From NCBI GenBank assembly GCA_964035545.1, contig OZ037766.1, positions 12,142,722 through 12,206,721 on the forward strand: a stretch of 64,000 nt of DNA, read 5' to 3'. Position numbers and translations under genes: made by a program. Source of the DNA: Bugula neritina (lineage: Eukaryota; Animalia; Bryozoa). This document shows, piece after piece, positions 2,713 to 64,000 of this stretch. Each line of letters begins with the position of its first letter. The first letter of the stretch is position 1. The notes below the pieces were generated by a model. The model was not told the DNA's origin. It searched no databases and saw only the letters and a program-made list of their open reading frames with translations.

Positions 2713-2713
2713 G

Positions 2714-7258: not shown

Positions 7259-7669
7259 GGGCCACACGAGGCGTTTATATACGTCCTAGAAAACCCGTTC
7301 AGATATGCCACACACAATGCGTGTGTTGCGAGTAAGAAAATTTATTAGCTAATGATTTTAGAGTTAAACTTTACTGCTCGCCTACAGAAGTTTGTTTATA
7401 AAACTACGTCATCGGCAAAGTGACTTTAGATATTATAAAAGCGGAAATGTAAATTATATGAAACTGTTTTAATTCAGTTCGCTAAAAGCTAAAACGTGAA
7501 CTGAAATAAAAAAAGTGTGCTCGCTAAATGATAATAAGCCAATTGGATTAAACACACACGAGCTTGCCGCTGAGCTCGCTCAGCATGTTAGACGTGAAAA
7601 TCCCACTCATGACGTTCAATTTTTGGGCCAAACGGGGGTTTCTCGCACGTCATGAACGTAGTGTGGCCC
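7259..7669. mobile_element. MITE (non-autonomous DNA transposon) with GGGCCACAC termini and TA duplication
   Basis: tgTA|GGGCCACAC...GTGTGGCCC|TAca. The imperfect inverted match extends about 40 bp inward (cgtt.at..acgt...agaaa.cccgtt). No ORF inside. Confidence 0.75.
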
Positions 7670-10457: not shown

Positions 10458-10513
10458 ACAAAATGGCCAACAGAGTACACGATATGGGAATGGACAGAGC
10501 ACAAGGCTCAAGG
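10458..10513 (+). CDS. First coding exon, MANRVHDMGMDRAQGSR (ATG at 10463)
   Basis: tttcag acceptor, AAAATGG start context, AGG|gtatgt phase-0 donor. The peptide resembles the transgelin/calponin N-terminus (MANRGP.YG..R). Confidence 0.85.
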
Positions 10514-13500
10514 GTATGTAGAATCAAACAACACATTGACTTTGCAGTTAAACATTTGAGGTAGGTGCAGTGATGGAGAAATTGAGAAACGCCTGTGATC
10601 TAGAATAGAAATGTAGCAAAAGAAGTTATGTCCACGTGAGAATTTCAACCCGTGCCCCAAACCAAAATTAAATAAAAAAAAAAAACTTAGGCTACCTCAA
10701 TTTCTCCACTACTGCTCCTAAATGACTGTGCAATGCCAAGCTCTATAAATATTGTAAAATATTGATTCTCAAGCATTTCCGATTAGCTTCTATGATCTTA
10801 TTATTTCATTGATATATTTCATCAAGTGTTGTGCTAAAACTGTGGGTTTTTATTTCGAAGACATTTTTTGTACTTTATTTTTTATTTTAAGGCAATTCAG
10901 GTATCAGAATTTTAGATTTACTTTTTAAAATATTTTATTTGGTTTAGTTTAACCATTCACCAATACTAGTAGTCTGGTATATTATGGTGTTTCTGGTCGT
11001 GATAGTTAAACCAGCCATGACTCTAACTTGCGTTATTAAGTGAGTTTGACGCTAGTTAGCTAGTTAGGGTTGGCGGAACCAAATAAATAATTTTCCAGAA
11101 TTTCTTATGACTTTTGGTAATCTACTACATAGAAAGAACCTTCCCTTTGAGCATCTTCTACTAATTAACTACTAGTTACTTTAGCAGTACTCATAATTAC
11201 CTGGTATCATCTGCATGTATACAAACTATAAGATATGCCTGGGAACTTCATTGATGTAATCATAGCCCTATATATTCATACTTTGATTAGTTATATAGGG
11301 ATTATATTTAGTAGTTATGGATATTATATACCATTCATTATAGAATTGCATGATGGTGATACTTATCTGTTTTCCTTGGTTTTTGCTACTTTGTGAAGAC
11401 TACAGTTTAAAGTTTCCACTGAGATTTGTTATTCAATCTACAATAACTACAAACAGAATAAAAAAATATTCACTTTAAATCAATCTGGGAGAAAAATAGA
11501 AAATTTTTATTTTTGTAATAAGAGTATTTAGTAGGAAAAACTTTTCTTGTACGAAAACATGAAGTAATGCTATAACAACATTAATAAATTTTTTATTAAA
11601 ATAATTTTTACAAAAATCAAAGAATGGTTGCATAAAGCCCTGTTAATATTACTTAGTTGGCAGTCCTAACTCAAGGCGCAACATTGTGTTAATTGACGCA
11701 TTTATTTCTGAAAGTTCAAAAAGTATTTTACGCCCCAGCTGATTGTGTTTGAAAAATAATAAATTGCTATGCAGAAGAAGAAGGTGCAATCTTATATATT
11801 TTTTTTTCTCTATAGCTTCAAAATTTTTTGTTGCTGATGATTTAGAAAGCTTTAATTTAGTTAGAATATAAATGATTTCATTGGCCTATTGGTTATAACA
11901 AAGGCCTGGTGTGACACAGGTTATGGGTTCAAATACCAGCACGGCCATTGGTGATGTCAGGAAGATCATCCAATCATATTTGCTCCTGTGTCACAGTAAA
12001 AGCTCTCAAACCATGTTGCTAGCGTAGTCACAGTTCTTAACCCACTCATAAACCCTTGTAATCAGGGATGAAGACTTTAAACAAATGTGATTTTTTCAAT
12101 AAACCTTTTCATTATATTTTGTCTCTTAAGTTTGGGAAGCTTTAGAAAATGCATATTGAAGATTTGAAAACGGAGTTTTGAATTTAAGGATTCTGTGTCT
12201 TAATTGTAGTAATCTAATATAGGGATTAATTTGCTATTTAATATTTAAGTGCAGACTACTTGTACAATACTTTTTGTAAGCAGGATATTAAAACTCAAAC
12301 ATTCAAAGAGACAGCTGCTGATGGCACTGTCACCGTTACAACACGTACCACTACTACGTATGAGGGAGGGGTGAGAGTCGGTTTGCTACGACCTTTATAT
12401 GTTACCCTGACCTTTAAATGTTTCCTTGACCTTACCTGCTGCTTAAGCTATGATCATTAATTGATGGCGCAATGCTTGATGAACTGATTGTGCAAATGCC
12501 TGCAGCTGTTATAAAGCGCATAAGGAATTCAAAATATTTCCATAATGAAGAGCCAAAACGGTTTGGTATGCTCGCAGTAAAAATAGCTAACGTCTGTTTT
12601 CGTTTCGAAGATATTTAAGCAAAACCAATAATTCCAACACACATTGCTCTACGCTGACCCTAAAGCAGTTTGTCTCTGTTAACCCACCTTGTCATTCTGA
12701 TGTCTTCTTTGCTGATGGAATGTGAAAGTCTTACCTAAAAGTCGTGTTTTGACCTCAAAACCAACTTCTTGTCTTTAGCCAGGTAAGCCTAGAATATGCA
12801 TTGAAATGTTATTGCAATTGTTTTCAATCGCTAGAGACTTGATTTTAGTTTTGTTTTATGATATTAACATAGTAAATGTTTCGTGAATTGATATTACGAA
12901 ACTGAACAGTGTTGTGATAATATTTTAGAGAACTGAGGTTCAGGAAAGTAAAGAGGTTCACAAACCTCAACAGCAAATTGTAATAAAACAACCAGAGTCA
13001 CGGCGGCGACAGGTTTGCTATAAGTTTTCTGATCTAAATAGTATAATATATACACATGTAGCCATAACCATTGCTGCTATAGATAATACCATTACTTATC
13101 TTGTTGGTTTGGTTTTGACTGTACAATCACATTTACTGTTCTGTGTAAATGATGTGTATATATGCATGGAAAACTGTTATTTGGGTTTATGCTAAAGCTG
13201 TGTCGCTAGTACAACCTTGTAAAACTATCTGTAGGATGGGAGAACTGTTGAAGAGGTTTTGCCGGATGATAGTGTGGTTAGAAGAAGAACCTCCAGGAGT
13301 AGAGTATCGTCCAGCAGTGGTGATTCGTTGACTTCTCGTAGATTCCAACGTGTATGTATAGTAGTCAATTCATGGTTCTTGTATTTGTGCTATATTCTAT
13401 AGCTCAAACATAGTTTATATGCTATTTAATGTTACATATATTTATGTTCTAATACACATTGTATAAAATAATTCCAAATATCATTACATAGTCGAGTATT

Positions 13501-16500
13501 ACATATAATAACCATTGCTGCTATAGATAATACCATTACTTATCTTGTTGGTTTGGTTTTGACTGTACAATCACATTTACTGTTCTGTGTAAATGATGTG
13601 TATATATGCATGGAAAACTGTTATTTGGGTTTATGCTAAAGCTGTGTCGCTAGTACAACCTTGTAAAACTATCTGTAGGATGGGAGAACTGTTGAAGAGG
13701 TTTTGCCGGATGATAGTGTGGTTAGAAGAAGAACCTCCAGGAGTGGAGTATCGTCCAGCATTGATAGCAGTGGTGATTTGTTGACTTCTCGTAGAGCCCA
13801 ACGTGTATGTATAGTAGTCAATTCATGGTTCTTGTATTTGTGCTATATTCTATTCAAACATACTTTATGATATTCAGTGTTATATATATTTATTTTCTAA
13901 TACGGTTGTATAAAATAATTCCACATATGTTTTTACATAGTAGAGTATTAAATATAATAACCATTGCTGCTATAGATAATACCATTACTTATCTTGTTGG
14001 TTTGGGTTTGACTATGCAATCACATTTACTGTCCTGTGTAAATGGTGTGTATATATTCATGGAAAACTGCTAAAGCTGTGTCGCTAGTACAACCTTGTAA
14101 AACTGTCTGTAGGATGGGAGAACTGTTGAAGAGGTTTCGCCGGATGATAGTGTGGTTAGAAGAAGAACCTCCAGGAGTGGAGTATCGTCCAGCTTTGATA
14201 GCAGTGGTGATTCATTGACTTCTCGTAGAGCCCAACGTGTATGTATAGTAGTCAATTCATGGTTCTTGTATTTGTGCTATATTCTATTCAAACATAGTTT
14301 GTGATATTCAGTGTTATATATATTTATGTTCTAATATGTGCTGTACAAAATAATTCCATATATCATTACATAGTAAAGTATTAAATATAATAATCATTGC
14401 CACCATAGATAATACCATTACTTATCTTGTTGGTTTGGTTTTGACTACACAATCACATTTCCTGCTCTGTGTAAATGATATGTATATATTCATGGAAAAC
14501 TGCCATTTGGGTTTATGCTAAAACTGTGTCACTAGTACAGCTTTGTAAAACTATCTGTAGGATGGGAGAACTGTTGAAGAGATTTCGCCGGATGATAGTG
14601 TGATTAGAAGAAGAACCTCCAGGAGTGGAGTATCGTCCAGCATTGATAGCAGTGGTGATTCGTTGACTTCTCGTAGAGCCCAACGTGTATGTATAGTAGT
14701 CAACTCATGGTTCGTGTAGTGGTGCTATATTCTATAGCTCAAACATACTTTATGATATTCAATGTTATATGTGTTTATGTTCTGAGACATGTATAAAATT
14801 GATTGCATTGACTATATAGTAAGGTATTACATATAATAATGTAGAACGCCGACACTGCTCAGGAACTTGAGGATGATGACTCAATGAATATTGTAAGACG
14901 CTCTCGGACAAGCTTGCCTGGGCGCAGCAGAATTACCCATAGACGTATTGGAAGTGAATATAAGGCGGTAAGCTCATCAACGTTTTTTCTATGACTATTA
15001 ATACTTCTGCTGAAATCAAAACTTTAAAGATTATATATTTCAAAAATCTAAGTTTGAATATTTGTATTTTGTTTGGGAATTTTATCAAAGTCCATAAGTT
15101 GTCAAGTTCTGAACCGAAGTATTCAAGCAAGTCATTGTCTATCCCAGTGAATCTGGTGACATTCTCAATAATGTTGTGTCATATTTCTTTTGCTTACAAA
15201 TTTGCATTTTTAGTATTTCAAGCTGCAAGTTTCTGCAACCACACATTCTTATTACATATGTTGTTGCATGATATGACAGCATTGATGCTGACTAGATTGA
15301 TGTCAGTGTGCGGCTAATATTTCTAGTCAAATGAAGACCAATCAGAAGAAGGCATCTCTTCGAGTTCTCAGCATAGCTTTTCCTATGGAGGTGACGGTGA
15401 AAGCCAAATATTTCGTACAGGTTTAGAAGATAACTTGCATAGTGTGAGTAGTTAGTGAATGGCAATTTGACAAATGTAAATGCCATTCTTGTGATTTTGT
15501 GTGTTTCATGCTCCAGTTTTACTCTGCGTACATTTTAAAGGCAAATTTTAGGTAAATAAAAGAGAGTATGAACGAGATACCAGAAAAGACCCATTTTCTT
15601 CAACTTCAACTTCAACAACTAAATTTGAGTACGGAGAGAGTAGAGATACTGCTCCTACTTTACAAAAAGTAGAAGGCCTCCCAGAAGAAAATGATGATGT
15701 GGTGAGGAAGGAGCAGCCATATGTGTTGACCCAAGACCCGATAAGTTCACCCGTACCCAGTCTATCTCTGCTGTCTATTCCGTGCTTTACCCACGCTACC
15801 ACCATCCTTCTCACCATATATATGACTCATCATTTGACATTGTTTATAAGTAGTGCTCCAACTTTAGTATTGTACCCAGGGTTAGCGTAGTGTTGCATTG
15901 TAGACCAACAGTCACCTGCTTTTAGTGTATGTTATTACTGTTATCCCCGCTCCACTTTTATTGATATTTTTTGTTTAACTTAAAAAAAATTCTTTTCTAC
16001 TACTCACTTAGCTTGGGAGCCCTGCGTTCCCAAGTTCTTGAGTCAGTTTCAAATGTCATGTAATAAACTTGTTAGCATCTGTATCACTAAATATATACAC
16101 ATATTGTACATAAAGCACCATTTTTACATGTAGTAATATTATGGCAATAAACTATTCCAAACAAGAAAGCCACCGTCTGGTTATTGCATGCTATAATAAC
16201 TTTATATACTGCTGCTGTCCTTAGCAGTATTCATATTCACTTGCAGGAACTATTATATTATTTTATTATTATACTATTATATCGCTGTAAATATAATAAT
16301 AGTTGAGAGTGTATTTTGTAGCTGCTGGCTAAATATGATTATGGAGCTGAAAATGAAGTAAGAGAATGGATCCAAGCTGTAACTGGTACCAGTATTCCTG
16401 AAGGCCCAGATAATGTATACAGAGAGCTGAAAAGTGGAGTTGTGCTGTGCAAGTAAGAGTATAAACAACAGAAAATTCATGTCTTTTATGTCTTCAACCA

Positions 16501-19500
16501 TTTAGTAATTAGTACAATTTAGCTGTAACCTAATTTTTGGTAAACTTTTAGTTGTTAGATGCCTCTTATTACATGTTTAAAAAAACATTACACGGTAATT
16601 AAAAGTTGAAAATAGGCTATACTTCTCTTTTTTACACCTACAGTTATACTTTCTTCTTACAATCAATCTTGAAATAAATTAAACTTTTATGAAGAAATTT
16701 TATGTTTATGGTTGCCTGAAGCAAAAAGTTTCAACTGTATTTAGACTCTATGGTAACTTCATAGTCTTGAATAGTTGGTATTGATGTTAGTGATAGCTGT
16801 GAATTCAATGGAACACCTTAGCTTGTGTTTTAACATTTGGTTTGTCTCCTTTTAGCTTAATTTCTGCTCTTTATGATGGATCTTCTAAGTTATCTCCTGA
16901 AGCTCAAGCTTTCCGGCCAAGGATTAAGTCAAGTAACATGGACATTGCCTTTAAGCAGGTAAAGTTTCATAGCAGAGCATTCTTCTATTAGTATTGTGCT
17001 ACTGTCACTCTTTTGGCAGATTAGCAATTGAACTCTTCTGTTGTAAGATTCACACTTCTATAATAATTCCGTCAACTTATTTGGAATTTAATGTATTTAA
17101 ATTACTGATTATCTTAATAATTTATCTTTACTATAAAGTTTTAAAATACGGTAAAGTAAGTTCAGTATACCAGATCTTCATATATAGTAGTTTTCTTTCA
17201 AAATAATGATGTAAGGCTAAGAGATTTTATTACGTTATAATACTTGTAATTTATATGTAATAAAGTTGCATGAGTTTGCTTTTATTTTTCAATAATTATG
17301 TTGTATGATACGGTAATTATACTTATAGTTTTATGTATTCTGCAATAATTTCTATGTCAATATTTTCTTTTCTCAGCCTGACTGCATTTTTCCATACCTC
17401 ATTACTTACTGGCCTTTGCCAATTTCATAAAAAGTCTTAGTTTTTTCTCAGTAAATTAGTTGATCATGTTGTTAGGATGCTGATAAAAAAGATAACACTG
17501 AGGTTGGTTTTTGTACAGCTAAAGCTATTAGCTATAGCATACCTATTACATGTGCCACAAAGTTACCTGTCTCTATGTGTGTTCAGTTTAACAGAAGTGT
17601 CACTTTGCCAGCTGAAAAACTTGTATAATGCCCATTATAGTGAAACGTTCCTGTTTATGCTTATAAGATTATTTGCAACAGGACATTTCTTCCAAGAGTA
17701 ACTTGGTCAAAATAAAGTAAATACTTGAACAATAGCTGTTAAGTATTGCGTTCTGCAGTATACTGATAAATTCAATCATACATACTTTTATAAGTCTGAA
17801 TCATTGCAGCATATTTTGCTTGCCTCTGTCTAAATCCCGTACCCTGTACCTCGGTTATATCCTCAATACACCTGTATTGTACAGTGTTGACTGTATTGGT
17901 ATGTTGCAACCGTAAATGTTGTTCACCTTTCAGCGCCATGTCCTGATTGGGTGGCGGTATGTTGCAGCCGTAATTACTCCTCCAATTTGCACACTTTGTG
18001 ATGCAGGATGTAATATTGTCAGATTGCTTACTATATTACATGCATAATTGTGAAATTGTGTTATATATTTTACTAGTTACAATGAATGTAATAGTAATAC
18101 AGGGTGTACACTTTTATAAGTTTTATAGTTTTCAGCAGTAGCATGTGATGTATCACTTGTATAGTTATTAAAACAAATTGTTCAACATTTGTAGATGGAG
18201 AATATTGAGATATATTTGAAAGCTGCCTCTTTATATGGGGTTCCAATCACTGGCATCTTTCCAACTGTAGACCTATTTGAAAATAGGAATCTAGGTGCCG
18301 TCATAGCAGGTCTTCAATCACTTGGTAGTGAGGTAATGGAATACTTTGCTCTTGATCTACCGGCCCCTTCAACCCTTCAATTATGTTAACAATACTAGCT
18401 GGCTAACATTTCTAGTAGATTCTTCTTTGGTATTCCAAATAACGAAGATGCTAATGGTTGCCAAACTACTGTATGTTGTTATTTTTATGCTGATATTTCT
18501 CTCTTGTTTGACTCTGAACTTATTCAATAGCAGAAAATATTGATATTGTCAGGCACAGAGACATGAATTCAGTGGTGCTACATGCGGTCCCAAACCAACC
18601 GTAAAAAATAAGAGGAACTTTACTATGGAACAGCTCAAAAATGGCGACTCTATCATTGGTCTTCAGTCAGGTAGGTTATAATGCAATGAGTATCAGATGT
18701 GTTACTGGAATATAGTATTTTGTATGGCTTAGTGGTTTTAATGCATAAAATAAGTGGGTCTTTTAAACACATTCTGCTGATTTTCGTATCTGGATTTGAA
18801 AAATATTTAGAGAATACTTTGTTTTTAAATGTCTATTTATATTATATTACTGTGTTTTATACAATACGTGCACATGTATGTATATATCATTATGTGTAAG
18901 AACTGATATTTTCTTAAGTTTAAACTTTAAACAACTTTTTGGAGAAAAGTTAAACAATAACTGTATCTTAAGGCCAATAAGCACGTTTTATGCTGAAGAG
19001 TGGGCTGATGGAGAATTTGTGATGATAGCCTTACTGCATGTTATAAATTTCCTACATTAGAATGCATGTTTTCTGCAGTGAATGTAAATAGTGCAGTAGC
19101 TGTTGATCAGACAACTCTTAAACATTGCAACTGCAGAATTTGTTATTCGTTTAGTCTGTCATTCAACGTGATACAGTGTACCCATCTTTTGTTTTTTTCC
19201 AGATTTCTTTATCTAATTGCTATACATATTAATGAGAAGCAGTGTTTAACCATCATAGGGTGGGCAGATTTGGCTGGTTTTAACACTTGACACATCAAAC
19301 TAAATTATTTATTTAATTGAAACCTTACACCCCCAGTGCTACCTTCCTCTGTCCTGTCTTACCAAACCACCACCTAGTCTTGTGATTCTAGGTACCAATA
19401 AGTTTGCTTCACAAAAGGGAATGTCAATGGGTGCTGTCCGTCACATTGCGGACATCCGGGCTGATGACATGAATCAAAACGGGCAAGGAATTATCAATTT

Positions 19501-22500
19501 GCAAGCAGGCACCAACAAATTTGCCTCGCAGAAAGGAATGAGCATGGGTGCTGTTCGTCATATTGCTGATATTAGAGCTGATGATATTAATCAAGACGGG
19601 CAGGGATTTGTTCAGCTTCAGTCTGGTTAGATAAAGCTCTTTTGAATTTAGTATCCATTTTTAGAAAGCAATTTCTTAAATTCACTTTCAATTCTTCCAA
19701 CATTTAAAGTCTCATCTAAGACATTGACTATTTATTTCCAATATTCCTATAAAACTATGCCAAGTAGATTATTCCTTAATTCTTACTTTCTCACTGTAAG
19801 CCAACATGTAATAGGATCACAGCTGTTGATAATTACATAACCAAAGTTATGATAATAAGCTCCAAAGTCCTTTAGGTACTATTTACTAACTTTAGCAGTT
19901 ATGACTTTATGTAGGAATAAATAGTTTTCTATAATCTTCTTTGATTCAACATGCTTAAATATTTTGGATGCATAAATTTTTTTATATCATTAAATAAAAT
20001 TTGTGCCTTGACAGTGTTTTTGCCGCACATGCTGCTAAGCTCTCAGTAGTGTAAAGTTTCTTGATGGCTTAAACTAATCATAGATGCCAAGTGTTTGAAG
20101 GAAATAGTAGGCTTTATATGCTTTAGATGATATATATGTTTTCTGCCACCACCTACATTGCTTGATTGCACTACTTGTAGTACCTAAAATCTACTCAAAA
20201 TTGTAATGCTGTTAATTGAAATTTTTGGGATTCTAGTTTTGTATATGATGAGCTGGCAAAGTATAATCGGTAGCGATTTGATTTAAATGACGTCTAGGTA
20301 CCAACAAATTTGCTTCGCAAAAGGGAATGTCAATGGGTGCTGTCCGCCATATCTCTGATATTCGAGCCGATGATATGGATCAGAATGGACAAGGAATTAT
20401 CAATTTGCAAGCAGGCACTAACAAATTTGCCTCGCAGAAGGGAATGAGCATGGGTGCTGTTCGTCATGTTGCTGATATTCGCGCTGACGATATGAATCAG
20501 GAAGGGTGTGGTGTCATTGGCCTTCAGTCAGGTATAATTAAATAAGTCATTTAGAATTAGTCTCAAAGTGTCCTAGAATTCTGCATTGAAGAAAGGCTAA
20601 TGCTTCTTTCAATTCTTTTTTAAACTTGGTTTATGCAAGAATACTTGGAGTAACCTGTTTTAAAGTAAGCGCGGGCTATTGTAGGTACAAATAAGTTTGC
20701 TTCACAAAAAGGTATGTCAATGGGTAAAGTACGTCATATTGCCGACATTCGAGCTGATGATATGGTGCCAGAAGGGCATGGTCAAATACAACTTCAGTCA
20801 GGTACAAATAAGTTTGCATCGCAGAAGGGTATGTCTATGGGGAAAGTAAGGCATATAGCAGATATCCGTGCCGATGATTTGTCTCGGGACGGAATGGATC
20901 ACATTCAGTTACAGTCAGGTTTGTTTAGCTAGACATTGCTGCGAGGAGTTGAAGATTGTTGTGCATTCTTGCACGAGTCAGCTTGGGAAATTTGTTTGAA
21001 ACGGGGTGTCAGCATTACAATTTTGAGTAGATTTTAGTTTGCTAGCTAGCCACTTCCTGCTTGCTCTAATCCTTTCTCACCGGATCTCACTTTTTGCATA
21101 AAACTTGGCCTGTCGGGTGAGTTCTATTTAGCTAATTGTAGTAGTAGTAGCTAGTAGTAGTAGCAGCTGGTTATATGAGCTCTATAAGTTTGAAATTGCA
21201 TTTGTGTGACTTTGTGCATTGAGTAATTTTCTTAAATACTAACACACCTGAAGAGGGTGGTAGCTCAGCAAAATCTCAAGGAGTCGTCTACGGTTCGATG
21301 AGACATGCAGCTGACACCAAAGTTGAACCATGGATTGACCAGAAGGGTCAAGGCATTGTCACTTCACAAACTGGTACTTTATACGTATTTAAAAATTGTT
21401 AGATAACTGTTGATATGATAGAAAGGTTTTAGGTTAGTGACTTCAGTAACTATACATTTTGTAGAGAGTCTAGCATGAATCATTTCTAGTAAATTTAATG
21501 AAATTAAACAACTTAAATGATGACAAAAAGGAATTATTCGCATAGGTGCAATTGAGAGAAATTGTACGATTTTAAATTTGTAGAGCGTTGAAATTTTTTC
21601 CAATTTTTTGAATCCTACTTTCAAGCTGTCTGATCTTCAAACTTTGTCATATGCTGATTTTTACTTATTTTTTGCAAAACCTAAATGAAAATGATGAAAA
21701 GATTAAAAGAACTGTATATATTTTTAGAAAAAGAAAAAATGCATCAGTTGAACGATTGATTATTTAACTAACTTGTTACATTGACAAATAATAAAATGTA
21801 TTTGTAGGTGAAGTCCATGAGAACTTTACTCTACAGTTTGTGAGATTAATCACAGTTTAAAATTAATTCAGCAAAGATTATAATTATGATCATTATTGTT
21901 TTTCTTTACGTCCAGTTTCTAATAGTTGGCACTGTAATTTCTTGAATAAAATTGAAAGAAACAAGTGCAGCCCTGAAACAATCATGCAATATATATGCAA
22001 ATTATTTAAACTCTGTGAATTGATGAATATGAATTGGCCATTTTCATTTTACCATGCTTGATTAATGCTACAAAAATTGAAAAGAAGTTAATAATGGATT
22101 ATCCTCTTCCTGAGCAAACTAGAAATATTGGCGATTTGTTAACAATATAAAACCTTTTAAAATTGCTTAAGAAAGTTGTTATATTTGCCCTAGCCTACTA
22201 CCCTTTTAGAATAAATTATCAGAAAAATGAAATTTACTGACTTCTATGACAACTCGTCAACAAAATTCACACGCAGCTACTTTTACTTAATACACCCTTA
22301 TTAGAGGTTTCATCGCTAGGCGAAATGTAGTGTCTAACTGGGAAGTGTCTATCTGGGATGACACCTTATTAAATCTTGAGAGAATATACAAAATCATGAA
22401 AAGGCTAAAGAAGTTGATAAAGAAAAACGTAGTATACGATGAGAAAAGATTTGATGACCACGGATCAGTTTTCACAAACGCAGATTATTTTGTGTATAGT

Positions 22501-25500
22501 AAATTGTTGCTCTGTGAATGAGGTCTGTTATGGTTATATGTATGCGAATAATTTTTAACGTCTTTTTTTATAACAGAATAGCTAAAATCAGAAATGGCTT
22601 TGAAATTAGACTCACACTATAAAAATCAAAGCTATTTATGATTTCGGTCAACTAAAGTAGAAAAAACTATCAATAGGGGGACCAAAAGCTACAAAGTGTA
22701 TATAGAATTTTGGTTTTTGTACTTCAACCGGAATAAAAATAGTAAAGTATCTAAAAACATGTTTTGAGTATTAATAAAGGAACGCCATAGGCTCTAGATT
22801 TTAAAGCTACTGGAAGCAGAATGGAAATAAAAGCATGCTGTGGCGTTGCAACTATTTTATTTACCTCTACAGGTACTGGAGAACATGCATCTCTGAATGG
22901 AATGAATATTGGTAGTATTAGACATGCTTCTGATATTAGAGCTGAAAATGTTACTCCGCAATCTCAAGGAATACTAACTGAACAAACAGGTATACAATTT
23001 CGCTGAATGTTTTTTTATTTTGGCTTAGTTTTTCAATTAAAGGTGTTATTTTCTCAATTCATTCAATTTCTAGCCATTCAACATACTTTCATAGGTACTG
23101 GAGAACATGCATCTCTGAATGGAATGAATATTGGTAGTATTAGACATGCTTCTGATATTAAAACTGAAAATGTAACTCCACAATCTCAAGGAATACTCAC
23201 TGAGCAAACAGGTGTGTAATTTTGCTGTATGTCCTTTTAATTACATTTACTTGTTCAATTCAAGCTTTTAATTCTTTTAATTTATTCAAAATGCAATCAT
23301 TGAATATGCTTCGATAGGCACTGGAGAACATGCATCTCTGAATGGAATGAATATTGGTAGTATTAGACATGCTTCTGATATTAGAACTGAGAATGTTACT
23401 CCACAATCTCAAGGAATACTAACTGAACAAACAGGTATATAATTTTGTTGTATTTCATTTTATTTTAGTTTAGTCATTCAAATAAAGCTGTTAATTAACT
23501 TAATTTATTCAAAATGCAATCATTGAATATACTTCGATAGGTACTGGAGAACATGCATCTCTGAATGGAATGAATATTGGTAGTATTAGACATGCTTCTG
23601 ATATTAGAACTGAGAATGTAACTCCACAATCTCAAGGGATACTAACTGAGCAGACAGGTGTGTACTTTTGCTGTATGTCCTTTTAATTACATTTAGTTGT
23701 TCAATTCAAGCTTTTAATTCTTTTAATTTATTCAAAATGCAACCATTGAATATACCTTTCTAGGTACTGGAGGACATGCATCTCTGAATGGAATGAATAT
23801 TGGTAGTATTAGACATGCTTCTGATATTAAAACTGAGAATGTTACTCCACAATCTCAAGGAATACTCACTGAGCAAACAGGTGTGTAATTTTTTCTGTAT
23901 GAAAAAATATTTTGGTTTTATTTTATTCGATTAAAACTGTTTATTCGTTTATTTTATTTATAATGCAACCATTTAATATATTTTTATAGGTACTGGAGGA
24001 CATGCATCTCTGAATGGAATGAATATTGGCAGTATTAGACATGCTTCTGATATTAAAACTGAGAATGTTACTCCGCAATCTCAAGGAATACTAACTGAAC
24101 AAACAGGTATAATTTTTTCTGTATGGAAAAATATTTTGGTTTTATTTTACTCGATTAAAACTCTTTATTAGTTTATTTTTCTTATAATGCATTGATTTGA
24201 TCACTTTTTTATAGGTACTGGAGGACATGCATCTCTGAATGGAATGAATATTGGCAGTATTAGACATGCTTCTGATATTAAAACTGAGAATGTTACTCCG
24301 CAATCTCAAGGAATACTAACTGAACAAACAGGTATAATTTTTTCTGTATGGAAAAATATTTTGGTTTTATTTTACTCGATTAAAACTCTTTATTAGTTTA
24401 TTTTTCTTATAATGCATTGATTTGATCACTTTTTTATAGGTACTGGAGAACGTGCATCTCTGAATGGAATGAATATTGGTAGTATTAGACATGCTTCTGA
24501 TATTAAAACTGATGATGTTACTCCACAATCTCAAGGAATACTCACTGAGCAAACAGGTAACTGCATATTTTAAGATTGCTGGTTTCAGTCATGTATAAAT
24601 GTAATTTCCTTGAATACTCACTGAACAAACAGGTATAATTTTGCTGAATGTTTTTTTATTTTGGCTTAGTTCTTCAATTAAAGGTGTTATTTTCTCAATT
24701 CATTCAATTTCTAGCCATTCAACATACTTTTCTAGGTACTGGAGGACATGCATCTCTGAATGGAATGAATATTGGTAGTATTAGACATGCTTCTGATATT
24801 AGAGCTGAGAATGTTACTCCACAATCTCAAGGAATACTAACTGAACAAACAGGTATAATTTTTTCTGTATGGAAAAATATTTTGGTTTTATTTTACTCGA
24901 TTAAAACTCTTTATTAGTTTATTTTTCTTATAATGCATTGATTTGATCACTTTTTTATAGGTACTGGAGAACGTGCATCTCTGAATGGAATGAATATTGG
25001 TAGTATTAGACATGCTTCTGATATTAAAACTGATGATGTTACTCCACAATCTCAAGGAATACTCACTGAGCAAACAGGTAACTGCATATTTTAAGATTGC
25101 TGGTTTCAGTCATGTATAAATGTAATTTCCTTGAATACTCACTGAACAAACAGGTATAATTTTGCTGAATGTTTTTTTATTTTGGCTTAGTTCTTCAATT
25201 AAAGGTGTTATTTTCTCAATTCATTCAATTTCTAGCCATTCAACATACTTTTATAGGTACTGGAGGACATGCATCTCTGAATGGAATGAATATTGGCAGT
25301 ATTAGACATGCTTCTGATATTAAAACTGAGAATGTTACTCCGCAATCTCAAGGAATACTCACTGAGCAAACAGGTATTACTTTGCTGCATGTCTTTTTAT
25401 TTCGGCTTAGTTTTTCAATTAAAGGTGTTATTTTCTCAATTCATTCAATTTCTAGCCATTCAACATACTTTCATAGGTACTGGAGAACATGCATCTCTGA

Positions 25501-46500: not shown

Positions 46501-49500
46501 GAGTGAGTAACTCTGTTTCGCATAGTACACCCAATTCAAGTTCTGTTCAGGGAATAGACAGGCGCAGCGTTCCTAATGGGCATAGAACAGTTACTTGAGT
46601 AGGTAGGGTTTCAGAGCCTCACACCAGATTTTGTCAGAATCTGTACTATGCCAAAACTTAGTTGACTTAAGTAAATGTACCATCGGAAGAATGTTTAGTA
46701 GTGCACATATATATTATGTTATATAACTTTGCTTTATCTTTCAACTACATGCTTTTGTAACTTTTTATACAATTAAATATTGTTACTGAGTCACTAAGTC
46801 TTCATTTTTGACTGCGGATAAGATGTTATAATGTCAACTACAGTTCATGTCTTGCCATACCTAATAGCTGTAGTGAGTATATATCTATATGTGAATCGTG
46901 CATTCTCTTACTATTGTCAGAGTCAGCATCTATGTACAATATTTGTCTCTAGATTTCATAGTGTTATCATCATTTATATTATTGGTAATTGCACCTAATA
47001 AATCTACAATGTAATTCATTGCAAGTCAACATCATCTTGTTACATATCATTACACTTCATAATGCCAACAAGAAACAAAAACATATAACAGTTGATCAAT
47101 TTGAATTTTTATTTAATTCAAAATTGTAACTATTATACTTCTATAGGTACTGGAGAACATGCATCTCTGAATGGAATGAATATTGGTAGTATTAGACATG
47201 CTTCAGATATTAAAACTGGAAATGTTACTCCACAATCTCAAGGAATACTAACTGAACAAACAGATATTACTTTACTGCATGTCTTTTTATTTGCTTAATT
47301 TTTCAGTAAAAACTGTTATTTAACTTAATTAAAATGCAACCATTTAACATATTTTCAATTAAAGCTTTTAACTATTTAATTTATTTGAATTGAACTTATT
47401 TTATATTATTTCATAGGTACTGGAGAACATGCATCTCTGAATGGAATGAATATTGGTAGTATTAGACATGCTTCTGATATTAGAACTGAGAGTGTTACTC
47501 CACAATCTCAAGGAATACTAACTGAACAAACAGGTATAACTTAGCTAAATGTAAGATTGTTGGTTTCAATCATGTATAAATGTATTTTTTCCAGTCAAAA
47601 TATATTCATGCTCATGTCTTTCTACAGGTACAGGTGGTCACGCTTCCCAGAAAGGAATGAATATGGGTTACACTTGGCATGCTGGTGATCATCCCTTAGA
47701 CAAATTGTCTCAAGAATCACAAGGAATTCTACACCATCAAACTGGTACTGGAGAGCATGCATCTCTGAATGGAATGAATATTGGTAGTATAAGACATGCT
47801 TCTGATATTAAAACTGAGAATGTTACTCCACAATCTCAAGGAATACTAACTGAACAAACAGGTATAGTTTTGCTGTATGGAAAATACTTCGGTTTCATTT
47901 TACTCTATTTAAACTGATTATTCATTAATTTTTTTATAATGCATTATTTTATTATATTTTTATAGGTACTGGAGAACATGCATCTCTGAATGGAATGAAT
48001 ATTGGTAGTATTAGACATGCTTCTGATATTAAAACTGAGAATGTTACTCCACAATCTCAAGGAATACTCACTGAGCAAACAGGTATAACTTAGCTAAATG
48101 TAAGATTGTTGGTTTCAATCATGTATAAATCTATTTTTCCAGTCAAAATATATTCATGCTCGCGTTTTTCTACAGGTACAGGTGGTCACGCCTCCCGGAA
48201 AGGAATGAATATGGGTTACACTTGGCATGCTGGTGATCATCCCTTAGACAAACTGTCTCAAGAATCACAAGGAGTTCTACATCATCAAACTGGTACTGGA
48301 GAACATGCATCTCTGAATGGAATGAATATTGGTAGTATAAGACATGCTTCTGATATTAAAACTGAGAATGTTACTCCACAATCTCAAGGAATACTAACTG
48401 AACAAACAGGTGAAATAATAATTGGTTTATTTTGTAGTTGTTTGTTGTTGATTAACTTGGACTTGTTTTTTCGGCGGACATCCTCTCACTTTTCCTTTTG
48501 TTTTACATTACTTTTAACAAACAGTCTAAGTTCATGATTTTGCATCCTGCACACTACGTTGTGGCACTACTTCTTAGCTTTTATCATACAATAACCTAAA
48601 GGAGCTTAAATCTTTGCTTTTTAATAATTAACTCACTGACATAGAGTCAATTTTCTGTCTGCAAGTGTTTTGGCACAATATTCCCGGGTAGGAAGTTGAA
48701 ACTAGAGTCATTCATCTTGTAAATTGTTCTCTCTCTTTAGTAAGCTGAAACATGATTTACTAGACATCAACAGTAAGGAACAGAAAATAAATAAAACTGA
48801 GTTAGCACAAACAAATAACAGAAACTCATGATTTGGTTTGTCATTGTAACTATTTAACATCTCAGTTATTGGTACCGACGATGCTTCAAAAAGTAAACAG
48901 TAGCAACAAAGTGGTAGGCGAGCATTCATAAGTTGTCTTTCCTTAATTTATCCTTCAACAATTTGCATATTTGAAATGGGTCCTCTCATATGACATCAGG
49001 ACATATGAGGTGTGGCTGTGCATTACCAATTTTTTTAGAAGGCTGTTTCAAGGCTCTCAGTAAAGTCATGAGCTCTATGCCGCTGCCTTGCTTTAAGGTA
49101 TTCATTGGTGTAGCTAAGTTTTCCTTTTTTGTTTCCCTGTTTTTTACGTATGTAATTTTGCATTATTCCTGAAACATTTGCAGAATGGTTGAATTACAAA
49201 GTTGATCTACATTATCATTTAGTCAAAGACTGAATGTATGTGTGATTTTATATGGCTTTGGCGGAAAAACTTTAATTGTAAAAAAAAACTCTTGAATACA
49301 AAAATTGGTGGGCCCAGTTGTAATGAATATGGTGAAAATGATTATTGGGGGAAGTTGTACATGATTCAAAGGGCTTCAACTAGCCCCAACACTGTCACGG
49401 TACAAATTATTGGCATTGTCTGCTGTGAATGAGATATCTATGCAACTTTAAGTTATTGGCCAGCTTTGAAACCATGTTTGCGACACTTGGCTGAGTTCAC

Positions 49501-58500: not shown

Positions 58501-61500
58501 AATGGCAATGGAATCTCAAGGTGTTCTCCACTCTCAAACTGGCACTGGGGAACATGCTTCTCAAAAAGGCATGAATATGGGCTATACTTGGCATGCTGGT
58601 GATCATCCCTTAGACAAATTGTCTCAAGAATCACAAGGAATTCTACACCATCAAACTGGTACTGGTGAACATGCTTCCCAAAAAGGAATGTCAATTGGTA
58701 AAGTGAGAATGGCAGCTGACACTCCCACTGATGAAATGGCAATGGAATCTCAAGGTGTTCTCCACTCTCAAACTGGCACTGGGGAACATGCTTCTCAAAA
58801 AGGCATGAATATGGGCTATACTTGGCATGCTGGTGATCATCCCTTAGACAAATTGTCTCAAGAATCACAAGGAATTCTACACCATCAAACTGGTACTGGT
58901 GAACATGCTTCCCAAAAAGGAATGTCAATTGGTAAAGTGAGAATGGCAGCTGACACTCCCACTGATGAAATGGCAATGGAATCTCAAGGTGTTCTCCACT
59001 CTCAAACTGGCACTGGGGAACATGCTTCTCAAAAAGGCATGAATATGGGCTATACGTGGCATGCTGGTGATCATCCCTTAGACAAATTGTCTCAAGAATC
59101 ACAAGGAATTCTACACCATCAAACTGGTACTGGTGAACATGCTTCCCAAAAAGGTATGTCAATTGGTAAAGTGAGAATGGCAGCTGACACTCCCACTGAT
59201 GAAATGGCAATGGAATCTCAAGGTGTTCTCCACTCTCAAACTGGCACTGGGGAACATGCTTCTCAAAAAGGCATGAATATGGGCTATACTTGGCATGCTG
59301 GTGATCATCCCTTAGACAAATTGTCTCAAGAATCACAAGGAGTTCTACACCATCAAACTGGTACTGGTGAACATGCTTCCCAAAAAGGAATGTCAATTGG
59401 TAAAGTGAGAATGGCAGCTGACACTCCCACTGATGAAATGGCAATGGAATCTCAAGGTGTTCTCCACTCTCAAACTGGCACTGGGGAACATGCTTCTCAA
59501 AAAGGCATGAATATGGGCTATACTTGGCATGCTGGTGATCATCCCTTAGACAAATTGTCTCAAGAATCACAAGGAATTCTACACCATCAAACTGGTACTG
59601 GTGAACATACTTCCCAAAAAGGAATGTCAATTGGTAAAGTGAGAATGGCAGCTGACACTCCCACTGATGAAATGGCAATGGAATCTCAAGGTGTTCTCCA
59701 CTCTCAAACTGGCACTGGGGAACATGCTTCTCAAAAAGGCATGAATATGGGCTATACTTGGCATGCTGGTGATCATCCCTTGGACAAATTGTCTCAAGAA
59801 TCACAAGGAATTCTACACCATCAAACTGGTACTGGTGAACATGCTTCCCAAAAAGGAATGTCAATTGGTAAAGTGAGAATGGCGGCTGACACTCCCACTG
59901 CTGAAATGGCAATGGAATCTCAAGGTGTTCTCCACTCTCAAACTGGCACTGGGGAACATGCTTCTCAAAAAGGCATGAATATGGGCTATACTTGGCATGC
60001 TGGTGATCATCCCTTAGACAAATTGTCTCAAGAATCACAAGGAATTCTACACCATCAAACTGGTACTGGTGAACATGCTTCCCAAAAAGGAATGTCAATT
60101 GGTAAAGTGAGAATGGCAGCTGACACTCCCACTGATGAAATGGCAATGGAATCTCAAGGTGTTCTCCACTCTCAAACTGGCACTGGGGAACATGCTTCTC
60201 AAAAAGGCATGAATATGGGCTATACTTGGCATGCTGGTGATCATCCCTTGGACAAATTGTCTCAAGAATCACAAGGAATACTACATCATCAAACTGGTAC
60301 TGGTGAACATGCTTCCCAAAAAGGAATGTCAATTGGTAAAGTGAGAATGGCAGCTGACACTCCCACTGATGAAATGGCAATGGAATCTCAAGGTGTTCTC
60401 CACTCTCAAACTGGCACTGGGGAACATGCTTCTCAAAAAGGCATGAATATGGGCTATACTTGGCATGCTGGTGATCATCCCTTAGACAAATTGTCTCAAG
60501 AATCACAAGGAATTCTACACCATCAAACTGGTACTGGTGAACATGCTTCCCAAAAAGGAATGTCAATTGGTAAAGTGAGAATGGCAGCTGACACTCCCAC
60601 TGATGAAATGGCAATGGAATCTCAAGGTGTTCTCCACTCTCAAACTGGCACTGGGGAACATGCTTCTCAAAAAGGCATGAATATGGGCTATACGTGGCAT
60701 GCTGGTGATCATCCCTTAGACAAATTGTCTCAAGAATCACAAGGAATTCTACACCATCAAACTGGTACTGGTGAACATGCTTCCCAAAAAGGAATGTCAA
60801 TTGGTAAAGTGAGAATGGCAGCTGACACTCCCACTGATGAAATGGCAATGGAATCTCAAGGTGTTCTCCACTCTCAAACTGGCACTGGGGAACATGCTTC
60901 TCAAAAAGGCATGAATATGGGCTATACTTGGCATGCTGGTGATCATCCCTTAGACAAATTGTCTCAAGAATCACAAGGAGTTCTACACCATCAAACTGGT
61001 ACTGGTGAACATGCTTCCCAAAAAGGAATGTCAATTGGTAAAGTGAGAATGGCAGCTGACACTCCCACTGATGAAATGGCAATGGAATCTCAAGGTGTTC
61101 TCCACTCTCAAACTGGCACTGGGGAACATGCTTCTCAAAAAGGCATGAATATGGGCTATACTTGGCATGCTGGTGATCATCCCTTAGACAAATTGTCTCA
61201 AGAATCACAAGGAATTCTACACCATCAAACTGGTACTGGTGAACATGCTTCCCAAAAAGGAATGTCAATTGGTAAAGTGAGAATGGCAGCTGACACTCCC
61301 ACTGATGAAATGGCAATGGAATCTCAAGGTGTTCTCCACTCTCAAACTGGCACTGGGGAACATGCTTCTCAAAAAGGCATGAATATGGGCTATACTTGGC
61401 ATGCTGGTGATCATCCCTTGGACAAATTGTCTCAAGAATCACAAGGAATTCTACACCATCAAACTGGTACTGGTGAACATGCTTCCCAAAAAGGAATGTC

Positions 61501-64000
61501 AATTGGTAAAGTGAGAATGGCGGCTGACACTCCCACTGATGAAATGGCAATGGAATCTCAAGGTGTTCTCCACTCTCAAACTGGCACTGGGGAACATGCT
61601 TCTCAAAAAGGCATGAATATGGGCTATACTTGGCATGCTGGTGATCATCCCTTAGACAAATTGTCTCAAGAATCACAAGGAATTCTACACCATCAAACTG
61701 GTACTGGTGAACATGCTTCCCAAAAAGGAATGTCAATTGGTAAAGTGAGAATGGCGGCTGACACTCCCACTGATGAAATGGCAATGGAATCTCAAGGTGT
61801 TCTCCACTCTCAAACTGGCACTGGGGAACATGCTTCTCAAAAAGGCATGAATATGGGCTATACTTGGCATGCTGGTGATCATCCCTTAGACAAATTGTCT
61901 CAAGAATCACAAGGAATTCTACACCATCAAACTGGTACTGGTGAACATGCTTCTCAAAAAGGAATGTCAATTGGTAAAGTGAGAATGGCAGCTGACACTC
62001 CCACTGATGAAATGGCAATGGAATCTCAAGGTGTTCTCCACTCTCAAACTGGCACTGGGGAACATGCTTCTCAAAAAGGCATGAATATGGGCTATACTTG
62101 GCATGCTGGTGATCATCCCTTGGACAAATTGTCTCAAGAATCACAAGGAATACTACATCATCAAACTGGTACTGGTGAACATGCTTCCCAAAAAGGAATG
62201 TCAATTGGTAAAGTGAGAATGGCAGCTGACACTCCCACTGATGAAATGACAATAGAATCTCAAGGTGTTCTCCACTCTCAAACTGGCACTGGGGAACATG
62301 CTTCTCAAAAAGGCATGAATATGGGCTATACTTGGCATGCTGGTGATCATCCCTTGGACAAATTGTCTCAAGAATCACAAGGAATTCTACATCATCAAAC
62401 TGGTACTGGTGAACATGCTTCCCAAAAAGGAATGTCAATTGGTAAAGTGAGAATGGCGGCTGACACTCCCACTGATGAAATGGCAATGGATTCTCAAGGT
62501 GTTCTCCACTCTCAAACTGGCACTGGGGAACATGCTTCTCAAAAAGGCATGAATATGGGCTATACTTGGCATGCTGGTGATCATCCCTTAGACAAATTGT
62601 CTCAAGAATCACAAGGAATTCTACACCATCAAACTGGTACTGGTGAACATGCTTCTCAAAAAGGAATGTCAATTGGTAAAGTGAGAATGGCAGCTGACAC
62701 TCCCACTGCTGAAATGGCAATGGAATCTCAAGGTGTTCTCCACATTCAAACTGGCACTGGGGAACATGCTTCTCAAAAAGGCATGAATATGGGCTATACT
62801 TGGCATGCTGGTGATCATCCCTTGGACAAATTGTCTCAAGAATCACAAGGAATTCTACATCATCAAACTGGTACTGGTGAACATGCTTCCCAAAAAGGAA
62901 TGTCAATTGGTAAAGTGAGAATGGCAGCTGACACTCCCACTGATGAAATGACAATGGAATCTCAAGGTGTTCTCCACTCTCAAACTGGCACTGGGGAACA
63001 TGCTTCTCAAAAAGGCATGAATATGGGCTATACGTGGCATGCTGGTGATCATCCCTTGGACAAATTGTCTCAAGAATCACAAGGAATTCTACATCATCAA
63101 ACTGGTACTGGTGAACATGCTTCCCAAAAAGGAATGTCAATTGGTAAAGTGAGAATGGCAGCTGACACTCCCACTGCTGAAATGGCAATGGAATCTCAAG
63201 GTGTTCTCCACTCTCAAACTGGCACTGGGGAACATGCTTCTCAAAAAGGCATGAATATGGGCTATACTTGGCATGCTGGTGATCATCCCTTGGACAAATT
63301 GTCTCAAGAATCACAAGGAATTCTACATCATCAAACTGGTACTGGTGAACATGCTTCCCAAAAAGGAATGTCAATTGGTAAAGTGAGAATGGCGGCTGAC
63401 ACTCCCACTGATGAAATGACAATGGAATCTCAAGGTGTTCTCCACTCTCAAACTGGCACTGGGGAACATGCTTCTCAAAAAGGCATGAATATGGGCTATA
63501 CTTGGCATGCTGGTGATCATCCCTTGGACAACTTCTCTCAAGAATCACAAGGAATTCTACACCATCAAACTGGTACTGGTGAACATGCTTCCCAAAAAGG
63601 AATGTCAATTGGTAAAGTGAGAATGGCAGCTGACACTCCCACTGATGAAATGACAATAGAATCTCAAGGTGTTCTCCACTCTCAAACTGGCACTGGGGAA
63701 CATGCTTCTCAAAAAGGCATGAATATGGGCTATACTTGGCATGCTGGTGATCATCCCTTGGACAAATTGTCTCAAGAATCACAAGGAATTCTACATCATC
63801 AAACTGGTACTGGTGAACATGCTTCCCAAAAAGGAATGTCAATTGGTAAAGTGAGAATGGCGGCTGACACTCCCACTGATGAAATGACAATGGAATCTCA
63901 AGGTGTTCTCCACTCTCAAACTGGCACTGGGGAACATGCTTCTCAAAAAGGCATGAATATGGGCTATACTTGGCATGCTGGTGATCATCCCTTAGACAAA
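10463..64000 (+). CDS. Giant calponin/transgelin(MP20)-family protein: CH domain + about 200 CLIK-derived 39-aa repeats (multi-exon, 3' end outside window)
   Basis: Frame-consistent GT-AG exon chain from ATG 10463 through the CH domain, GPK...RNFTMEQL...IIGLQSG linker and GTNKFASQKGM repeats into derived-repeat exons and a >14-kb open exon. Confidence 0.88.
10562..10720. mobile_element. Short intronic MITE (about 159 bp)
   Basis: TAGGTGCAGTGATGGAGAAATTGAG ... CTCAATTTCTCCACTACTGCTCCTA, a 25-bp inverted repeat with 3 mismatches. Confidence 0.7.
11882..12085 (+). mobile_element. tRNA-derived SINE-like element (decayed)
   Basis: A-box-like TGGCCTATTGG (11882) and B-box-like GGTTCAAATACC (11926) at tRNA-like spacing, followed by a non-tRNA body. 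No cloverleaf. The 3' end is approximate. Confidence 0.45.
12284..12370 (+). CDS. Phase-0 exon DIKTQTFKETAADGTVTVTTRTTTTYEGG
   Basis: cag|GAT ... GGG|gtgaga, 87 nt, open, more GC-rich than its flanks. Confidence 0.7.
12929..13012 (+). CDS. Phase-0 exon RTEVQESKEVHKPQQQIVIKQPESRRRQ
   Basis: ttttag|AGA ... CAG|gtttgc, 84 nt, open. Confidence 0.65.
13064..14840 (+). repeat. Four tandem units of about 440 bp, each with a phase-0 exon (13235-13351, 13679-13804, 14113-14238, 14561-14686) encoding DGRTVEEV.PDDSVVRRRTSRS.VSSS..DSLTSRR.QR
   Basis: Each copy has ctgtag|GAT ... CGT|gtatgt. Lengths are 117/126/126/126 nt, and the only exonic indel is 9 nt, in frame. Confidence 0.85.
14845..14967 (+). 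CDS. Phase-0 exon NADTAQELEDDDSMNIVRRSRTSLPGRSRITHRRIGSEYKA
   Basis: gtag|AAC ... GCG|gtaagc, 123 nt, open. Confidence 0.72.
15327..15443 (+). CDS. Phase-0 exon SNEDQSEEGISSSSQHSFSYGGDGESQIFRTGLEDNLHS
   Basis: tttctag|TCA ... AGT|gtgagt, 117 nt, open. Confidence 0.7.
15552..15701 (+). CDS. Phase-0 exon VNKREYERDTRKDPFSSTSTSTTKFEYGESRDTAPTLQKVEGLPEENDDV (3' boundary uncertain)
   Basis: ttttag|GTA, open hydrophilic frame, GTG|gtgagg donor at 15702. The frame stays open to 15890, so a later donor is possible. Confidence 0.55.
16322..18332 (+). CDS. Calponin-homology (CH) domain, three exons: 16322-16452, 16856-16958, 18195-18332
   Basis: Spliced translation LLAKYDYGAENEVREWIQAVTG...ELKSGVVLCNLISAL...AFKQMENIEIYLKAASLYGV...IFPTVDLFENRNLGAVIAGLQSLG has the calponin/MP20 CH hallmarks (KYD, EW, LKxGxxLC, FKQMENI, F.TVDL.E). 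Phases 2 and 0 match across the junctions. Confidence 0.95.
18553..18670 (+). CDS. Linker exon AQRHEFSGATCGPKPTVKNKRNFTMEQLKNGDSIIGLQS(G)
   Basis: Canonical calponin GPK....R.F..EQL..G..IIGLQ.G motif. gtcag| ... G|gtaggt, phase 0 to 1. Confidence 0.93.
19392..20918 (+). CDS. Three 234-nt phase-1 exons (19392-19625, 20298-20531, 20685-20918), each with two canonical calponin (CLIK) repeats
   Basis: GTNKFASQKGMSMG(A/K)VRHI(A/S)DIRADD....G.G.I.LQ(A/S) x6 with 39-aa period. Synonymous sites are diverged between copies. Confidence 0.95.
21254..21373 (+). CDS. 120-nt phase-1 exon, divergent transitional repeat (E)GGSSAKSQGVVYGSMRHAADTKVEPWIDQKGQGIVTSQT(G)
   Basis: TACTAAC branch point at 21237-21243, aag acceptor, G|gtactt donor. 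It keeps the G..RH.AD and QG.....Q.G repeat signature. Confidence 0.75.
26459..29456 (-). mobile_element. Decayed Academ-type DNA transposon (about 3.0 kb) inserted in an array intron
   Basis: TAT|TAGTCTAGAGGTAACTTCCCA ... TGGGATGTTAAACTTCTAGACTA|TAT gives an imperfect TIR with TAG..CTA ends and a 3-bp TSD. Internal remnants of an XPG-like GCD motif and a Cys-rich CXC tail match the domain content known for Academ elements. Confidence 0.75.
27210..27923 (-). pseudogene. Remnant of Academ protein: XPG/FEN1-like nuclease segment + CXC cysteine cluster
   Basis: IIKSQDIDVFIL...LPGFHTLAGCDFIS (27923-27663), and CCCKTSCKTS*CKCQKSSMQCTAVCPCKDCLN (about 27305-27210) with an in-frame stop at 27275-27273. 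Several further disruptions lie between them. Confidence 0.7.
31020..31487 (+). CDS. 468-nt four-repeat exon (B-C-B-A)
   Basis: ctacag|GTACAGG ... ACAG|gtacaa. It is the only exon before 49884 that contains the type C repeat (GMSIGKVRMAADTPTDEMAMESQGVLHSQT). Confidence 0.85.
37197..38666 (+). mobile_element. Internally deleted, decayed Gypsy LTR retrotransposon in an intron (copy 1)
   Basis: Diverged direct repeats start at 37197 and 38403. The 3' LTR (38403-38666) has TGTTATA..TATAACA ends after a purine-rich GGATAGGA. RT remnants read ATPFG*YGFLRLTFNISLASE and LKLNLAKCSFEKSEHRYLDHIIGQGVITADP. Confidence 0.75.
45618..47090 (+). mobile_element. Second copy of the same decayed Gypsy relic
   Basis: Near-identical to 37197-38666 at an offset of about 8421 bp, including the same intron flanks. 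3' LTR at 46824-47090. Confidence 0.75.
49884..64000 (+). CDS. Giant intronless exon (>14.1 kb, >4,700 aa): about 60 tandem 234-bp units encoding alternating B and C CLIK-derived repeats
   Basis: tttttacag|GGACAGGT phase-1 acceptor. The unit is GTGEHASQKGMNMGYTWHAGDHPLDKLSQESQGILHHQT-GTGEHASQKGMSIGKVRMAADTPTDEMAMESQGVLHSQT. No stop or indel was seen up to the window end, which is why it is absent from the ORF track. Confidence 0.92.

Follow-up and report, generated by a model that had tools for sequence, protein, structure and literature searches.

The binding of calponin-family proteins to filamentous actin (F-actin) is mediated by their CLIK repeats and not by the calponin homology (CH) domain, and CLIK repeat number correlates with binding and stabilization (PMC4436780). 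The repeats are unstructured in solution (PMC4436780). Published invertebrate calponins and calponin-like proteins contain 7–23 repeats, 23 being the maximum in the account of Ono 2021 given in PMC10285543. The Mizuhopecten calponin BAP84555.1, the Crenomytilus calponin-like protein, and their kin have one N-terminal CH domain and a 39-residue repeat spacing and motif, which are shared by the gene described here. The UNC-87 protein of Caenorhabditis elegans has tandem CLIK repeats as its main functional element, as does the present gene, and provides the best functional model: it stabilizes actin and gathers it into bundles, also binds to myosin, inhibits actomyosin, and blocks the action of cofilin, and unc-87 has two promoters (PMC4436780). 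UNC-87 contains seven repeats and no CH domain in 374–565 residues. By contrast, in a gene of the bryozoan Bugula neritina a CH domain is most likely attached to up to 241 repeats. The gene lies in a 64,000-nucleotide stretch of the forward strand (the window; assembly GCA_964035545.1, contig OZ037766.1, positions 12,142,722 to 12,206,721) and extends beyond it.

Coordinates are given in window numbering, continued past 64000 into the adjacent downstream sequence (Table 1). Counted exon by exon over the window and its downstream continuation, the gene contains 244 CLIK-like units. The canonical units K6 and K7 are separated by approximately 55 kb, here called the arm, which holds 235 CLIK-like units in the order transitional exon t (one unit), 82 units in 69 small exons, one exon of 135 units, 17 D units, a non-repeat tail, and a stop. 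The only complete isoform seen in RNA is 527 residues long (57 kDa), contains nine CLIK repeats, and skips the whole arm. The giant product is an alternative isoform and not the sole product of the gene, because this complete transcript splices K6 to K7. The arm, judged from the sequence, most likely forms an alternative 3′ end that brings the protein to as many as ~10,100 residues and 241 repeats. It is likely that the long product is a giant calponin, because its arrays are calponin-derived, transcribed, spliced, selected, and conserved. A first-pass annotation, made from the letters of the window alone, had read the locus as one giant calponin; the arrays are indeed real, derived from calponin, and transcribed, but the only complete transcript seen leaves them out.

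Table 1 Features of the giant calponin locus of B. neritina and of related or neighboring elements. Coordinates above 64000 lie beyond the window.
Feature	Coordinates	Strand	Remarks
First coding exon	10463-10513	+	ATG at 10463; 17 residues, calponin-type N-terminus, phase-0 donor
Eight optional phase-0 exons	12284-15701	+	313 residues, Arg/Ser/Thr-rich; all AG..GT and stop-free
CH domain and linker, four exons	16322-16452, 16856-16958, 18195-18332, 18553-18670	+	PF00307; identity to scallop calponin
Canonical CLIK repeats K1–K6, three 234-nucleotide exons	19392-19625, 20298-20531, 20685-20918	+	PF00402, 85 and 70 bits
Transitional exon t	21254-21373	+	120 nucleotides, 40 residues; AAG acceptor, TACTAAC upstream
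Small-exon array	22873-48409	+	69 phase-1 exons with 82 units (69 A, 12 B, 1 C)
Giant exon with B and C units in alternation	49884-65678	+	15,795 nucleotides (15.8 kb); window edge at 64000
D units, 17, divergent	66756-71363	+	Follow the giant exon; beyond window
Five non-repeat tail exons	71930-75054	+	543 residues; beyond window
Probable stop exon of the arm	75955, stop ~75967	+	Short exon upstream of K7
Canonical units K7–K9	76357 to stop ~77190	+	Normal stop and 3′ untranslated region; beyond window
Calponin paralogue	contig C1, ~268,200-274,000	-	19 units; five two-unit exons are duplicated; transcripts present in runs X2 and X7
Long terminal repeat (LTR) retrotransposon	2-2670	-	Gag-like open reading frame 1795-2670, then aspartyl protease and reverse transcriptase frame (PF00078, PF13650)

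The exon chain proposed by the first-pass annotation, from the ATG through the four CH exons, K1–K6, t, and the small-exon array to the giant exon, is correct. Inside the window it encodes 8,358 residues, or 8,671 with the eight optional exons, in agreement with the more than 8,600 residues estimated before. The joined chain served for a local check of frame and length, which gave 527 residues without the arm, 10,088 for the arm read to its own stop, and 10,197 if the arm rejoined K7. Pfam and homology searches were run on separate exons, and the comparison with PF00307 and PF00402 that the annotation had suggested recovered both family domains in this way. The first CH exon is a partial match to PF00307 (E = 0.0018). 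Compared exon by exon, identities of 57% and 50% were obtained to the part of scallop calponin BAP84555.1 that is covered by PF00307. The gene has a single N-terminal CH domain, as in the calponin/transgelin family. PF00402, for which the Pfam cut-off is 21.1 bits, matches the K and D units and pieces of the giant exon, which form C-terminal CLIK repeats. The first coding exon is 88% identical to its orthologue in a distant relative (L029), and no signal peptide was recognized in it by inspection; a secreted or cuticular structural protein was rejected as a candidate because a signal peptide is lacking. The optional exons, which include four copies of a 434-base pair tandem unit, are kept in the sibling lineage (L025), and the first of them is 76% identical in L029. 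They are a candidate N-terminal insert that could add 313 residues and bring to mind the N-terminal extension of UNC-87A.

The giant exon is composed of exactly 135 segments of 117 nucleotides, which form 67 BC dimers and one additional B unit and thereby a 78-residue super-repeat. The approximately 82 derived repeats in small exons and 120 in the giant exon reported by the first-pass annotation correspond to 82 counted units and ~120.6 units within the window, and the reading continues past the window edge. The small exons are separated by introns mostly 93–181 nucleotides long, and 68 of the 69 have AG..GT ends and phase 1. The A exon at 47147-47263 has the donor AT instead of GT and is probably a dead or skipped copy. 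None of the derived units contains a stop codon. The array is not a chance similarity: with PF00402, the first 372 residues of the giant exon reach 59 bits, and the D exon with eight units reaches 147 bits. Units A, B, and C align without gaps to canonical units at 46–49% identity and retain the serine of the ASQ motif, the Gly-Met pair, both glycines, and the Asp and Gln positions of CLIK repeats. We take the serine of the ASQ motif to correspond to the regulatory site Ser175. Ser175 of calponin has been named as a regulatory site (PMC10285543). A prediction of six B and C units with AlphaFold2 reached a predicted local distance difference test score of 30 and no confident fold, which is compatible with the reported disorder of CLIK repeats. 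A search of the ESM Atlas returned only generic repeat proteins below 0.9, and a sequence search of the PDB found no solved CLIK structure. One tail exon (L005:447-1652) contains a 12-residue Gln/Thr/Tyr tandem repeat, which has fewer copies in the sibling lineage and no Pfam match.

The BC dimers differ from each other on average by only 3.8 of 234 nucleotides, and the longest exact repeat extends over 1.6 kb, as could be expected if the assembly had been over-expanded or the array were a non-functional satellite. This explanation is extremely unlikely. The assembly tzBugNeri2.1 is based on PacBio HiFi reads at ~132-fold coverage (PMC11480708), which should resolve the array. There are 38 distinct sequences among the 67 BC dimers and 60 among the 69 A units, so that distinct copies alone give more than 130 units. 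The A exons diverge by 4%, as opposed to 38–58% in their flanking introns when compared without gaps, approximately ten times more. A non-coding satellite was rejected because of this contrast, the spliced RNA, and the existence of orthologues. Pseudo-exons were likewise rejected, as was a gene on the opposite strand, since the antisense frames are shadows of the repeat. Variation at third codon positions is 3–9 times that at first and second positions, and the ratio of nonsynonymous to synonymous differences (pN/pS), calculated from pairwise and hence non-independent counts, amounts to 0.14 in A, 0.08 in B, and, on few changes, 0.61 in C units. The B units are under equally strong selection in the giant exon and in the small exons (0.10 and 0.11). 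Judged by these ratios, A and B units are under purifying selection at the protein level.

Contigs of four RNA runs were compared to positions 18100-23250; since these are assembled contigs, the absence of a joint proves nothing, and their depth was not used to rank isoforms. GT..AG joints link the CH exons and K1–K6, including 18332 to 18553 to 19392. K6 is joined to K7 in three runs, of which two continue with the K7 letters of the sibling lineage, whereas the contig of the third reads K6-K7-K8. The donor of K6 at 20918 is the branch point between the short and the predicted long isoform. Joints of A to A exons with GT..AG boundaries are present in contigs of runs X10 and X2, one of which is an oligo-dT run, and continuation from B to A was also seen. 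Words sampled from the giant exon occur in three runs of two studies whose records give RNA, as well as in many others that were only presumed to be RNA. Exons in X2, X7, and X10 differ by ~2–4% from the window and match the sibling contig at K7, and those in X1 are at least 99% identical to the window; most of the RNA evidence probably comes from another lineage of B. neritina. A (TAG)n microsatellite at 21140-21175, upstream of t, draws short contigs of high depth in three RNA runs; a 30-nucleotide piece matches elsewhere in the genome, and this signal is probably unrelated to the gene.

A profile of the repeat units retrieved fragments of relatives, whose contigs were compared with the locus. 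The sibling lineage, with ~90% intron identity, retains t, A exons, the end of the B exon, D units, the tail, and K7–K9. In a distant species with 44% GC (L029-L031), the first exon, CH exons, K1–K6, and a t orthologue follow one another as they do here. This orthologue, located in L029, is a complete 40-residue CLIK unit; its phase-1 CTGAAG acceptor is the same, and TACTAAC lies upstream. Within the gene of B. neritina, t has the only AAG acceptor, and it is the only one of 96 acceptors with TACTAAC within 60 nucleotides upstream. The sequence TACTAAC is a STAR/Quaking-type motif. The acceptor and the motif, unique within the gene and conserved in L029, speak for t as an internal entry exon under regulation and for a connection of the arm with the CH and K exons; splicing from K6 into the arm is accordingly inferred from the conserved acceptor. 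In two further species the exon after a large non-repeat exon ends in a stop, and in L032 K7–K9 lie downstream; therefore, the arm reads as an alternative 3′ end. At least four other lineages (L022/L027, L024, L028, and L032) keep the arm with expansions of their own. L022 and L027 have a homogenized array of A-like small exons, and single exons with at least 7, 9, 13, and 27 units, each reaching the end of its contig, are present in L023, L024, L028, and L032. The units of L032 alternate in pairs, with a B-like change of Arg to Trp in every second unit. Orthologous expansions score 316 and 233 bits with PF00402.

By analogy with the family, we somewhat favor the reading that the CH-linked alternative giant isoform acts as a multivalent stabilizer or bundler of F-actin in a specialized contractile cell. 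The default splice of K6 to K7, a step seen in RNA, gives the 527-residue calponin with nine repeats. In some cells the weak acceptor of t may be used instead, under regulation, and the long transcript would then continue from t through the A exons, the BC giant exon, and the D units into the non-repeat tail and its own stop. Its product would be intracellular, with up to ~10,100 residues (1.07 MDa, ~1.1 megadaltons) and up to 241 CLIK-like units, and its length could vary since the A exons are all of phase 1-1. The repeats, probably disordered on their own, would attach laterally to F-actin, with an affinity that is low for each unit and an avidity that is high. By coating micrometer lengths of thin filament or zipping them together, the chain could shield these lengths against cofilin and also dampen or cross-link actomyosin, in the manner of UNC-87 with its seven repeats. 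Assuming one CLIK-like unit for each actin subunit, the full set of 241 would reach over ~0.7–1.3 micrometers. Weaker binding by the acidic, His-rich units might be offset by their number. A specialized muscle such as the polypide retractor is our guess for the likeliest site; a literature search gave no confirmation that the retractors of bryozoans are exceptionally fast.

Several observations weigh against this reading. Among the RNA contig rows shown there is no joint into or out of t (K6 to t, t to A) and none from A to the giant exon; a contig of X1 (21149-21315, depth 3) crosses the acceptor of t unspliced; and X7 contains giant-exon words yet no contig on A exons. The unspliced contig and the missing joints could mean that a separate promoter upstream of t drives the arm as a nested transcription unit, producing a CH-less, UNC-87-like giant from a methionine at 21298. 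The two promoters of unc-87 and the separate stop of the arm would fit such an arrangement, which is nevertheless improbable: the codons upstream of that methionine align without gaps to the start of a CLIK unit, t of L029 forms a complete unit whose phase-1 acceptor and TACTAAC are conserved, and the X1 contig, at its depth, may represent pre-mRNA or DNA. It is also unlikely that each mRNA samples only a subset of the phase-1 exons, or parts of the giant exon through internal donors, to give large and tunable calponins short of giant size. All array exons are of phase 1-1 and can be skipped, the donor of the copy at 47147 is lost, contigs from short reads cannot count copies per molecule, and the missing A contigs in X7 would agree with sampling. 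However, the 135 units of the giant exon make up a single frame that is free of stops and exact in unit length, and intact use of this exon alone implies at least 159 units; moreover, A exons are joined consecutively, and selection on B units is equal in the giant and small exons.

The derived units themselves provide further points against the favored reading. Searched singly, A, B, and t do not match PF00402, and C reaches 16.5 bits, below the cut-off. Units A, B, and C share only 15–19 of 39 residues with the canonical consensus; derived units are net acidic (−1.8, compared with ~0 in canonical units); a conserved Arg is replaced by Trp in B; and the pN/pS of C is 0.61, on few changes. Given the low consensus match, the acidity, and the Arg-to-Trp change, actin binding of the derived units may be weakened or lost. 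The repeats could in that case have been co-opted away from actin as an intracellular elastic or His-rich, metal-binding structural polymer. The charge reversal, the five histidines in each B unit of a generally His-rich array, the recurrence of Arg to Trp in alternate units of L032, and the resemblance of homogenized arrays to structural repeat proteins speak for co-option, which we regard as very unlikely, since the CLIK positions Ser, Gly-Met, Gly, Asp, and Gln persist, the orthologous expansions still score strongly with PF00402, and the absence of a signal peptide speaks against a cuticle protein.

Nebulin resembles the predicted stabilizer or bundler in being a giant of ~200 short modules bound to the side of the thin filament, a mode of binding that is plausible here. 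With 600–800 kDa (PMC2963174) it is smaller than the predicted long isoform, and its repeats belong to an unrelated family, so that the likeness is at most convergent. The nebulin repeat PF00880 has no match on any array piece or elsewhere in the genome, where the control was weak. A thin-filament ruler was among the roles suggested by the first-pass annotation. In a strict ruler of the nebulin type, one molecule would span the thin filament with one unit per actin subunit and set the filament length. The 39-residue unit and the count of 241 resemble the ~200 modules of ~35 residues of nebulin (PMC2963174), the distinct non-repeat ends could serve as anchors, and the absence of PF00880 from the genome agrees weakly, as the positive control failed to register. 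However, the seven-module, tropomyosin-matched super-repeat was not found: the period is 1 or 2 in this gene and in L032 (2 in the giant exon and in L032, with a lag profile flat beyond), and there is none in L028. Unit numbers are labile, the first D exon containing eight units here and five in the sibling lineage, and even nebulin acts largely through stabilization (PMC2963174). The ruler is thus not specifically supported and is rather improbable. It is possible, and we advance it only tentatively, that the gene encodes a bryozoan analogue of nebulin that evolved independently from calponin, a 1-MDa protein of ~240 repeats under a conserved splice switch that would span and stabilize, and possibly size, thin filaments, tuned by lineage.

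In comparison with the multi-repeat invertebrate calponins, the short isoform with nine repeats is an ordinary member. By contrast, the long arm has approximately ten times the published maximum of repeats, homogenized derived types, a dimeric super-repeat of 78 residues, an exon of 15.8 kb, and a C-terminal tail of its own. The predicted long isoform is an extreme variant of the calponin family, ~tenfold beyond the published range; the excess of one to two orders of magnitude claimed by the first-pass annotation holds at its lower end, but not at its upper end, given the published protein with 23 repeats (PMC10285543). A paralogue in the same genome also has calponin repeats in duplicated phase-1 exons and, seemingly, two alternative terminal exons. 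Three single-repeat, transgelin/MP20-like genes are located on contigs C3 and C6 (L019, L020, and L021). Searches for homologous proteins of the giant exon (~2,600–8,200 and 770–2,450 residues) or of t found none, a weak negative in that the published molluscan protein with 23 repeats was also missed. A profile search of representatives clustered at 50% gave none longer than 785 residues or with more than seven matched stretches among the best 150, behind which long members may hide. Exon t had no match in metagenome scans, and no description of a bryozoan calponin was found in the literature. The B. neritina protein KAF6027298.1, a 70-residue fragment in an older assembly, contains a stretch that is identical to a C-type unit.

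In the neighborhood, the protease and reverse transcriptase frame of the LTR retrotransposon runs past the start of the window, the first 2 kb of which have 58% GC. At ~113–137 kb in continued coordinates (L009-L012), several small genes that resemble one another, each with multiple exons and a hydrophobic segment at the N-terminus, form a local cluster on both strands.

Genes of this kind fragment in short-read assemblies and annotation, which may explain why no description turned up. The giant filament proteins usually cited for invertebrates are titin-like, with Ig and Fn3 domains, or consist of nebulin repeats. The gene bears on how invertebrate muscles stabilize and size long thin filaments, and a calponin of this scale would, if the reading is true, add one more independent way of arriving at a cytoskeletal protein of giant size. 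The natural series of 9, 19, at least 27, and 241 repeats, together with the homogeneous and readily concatenated A and BC units, lends itself to testing how the number and sequence of CLIK repeats relate to binding, bundling, and inhibition of myosin.

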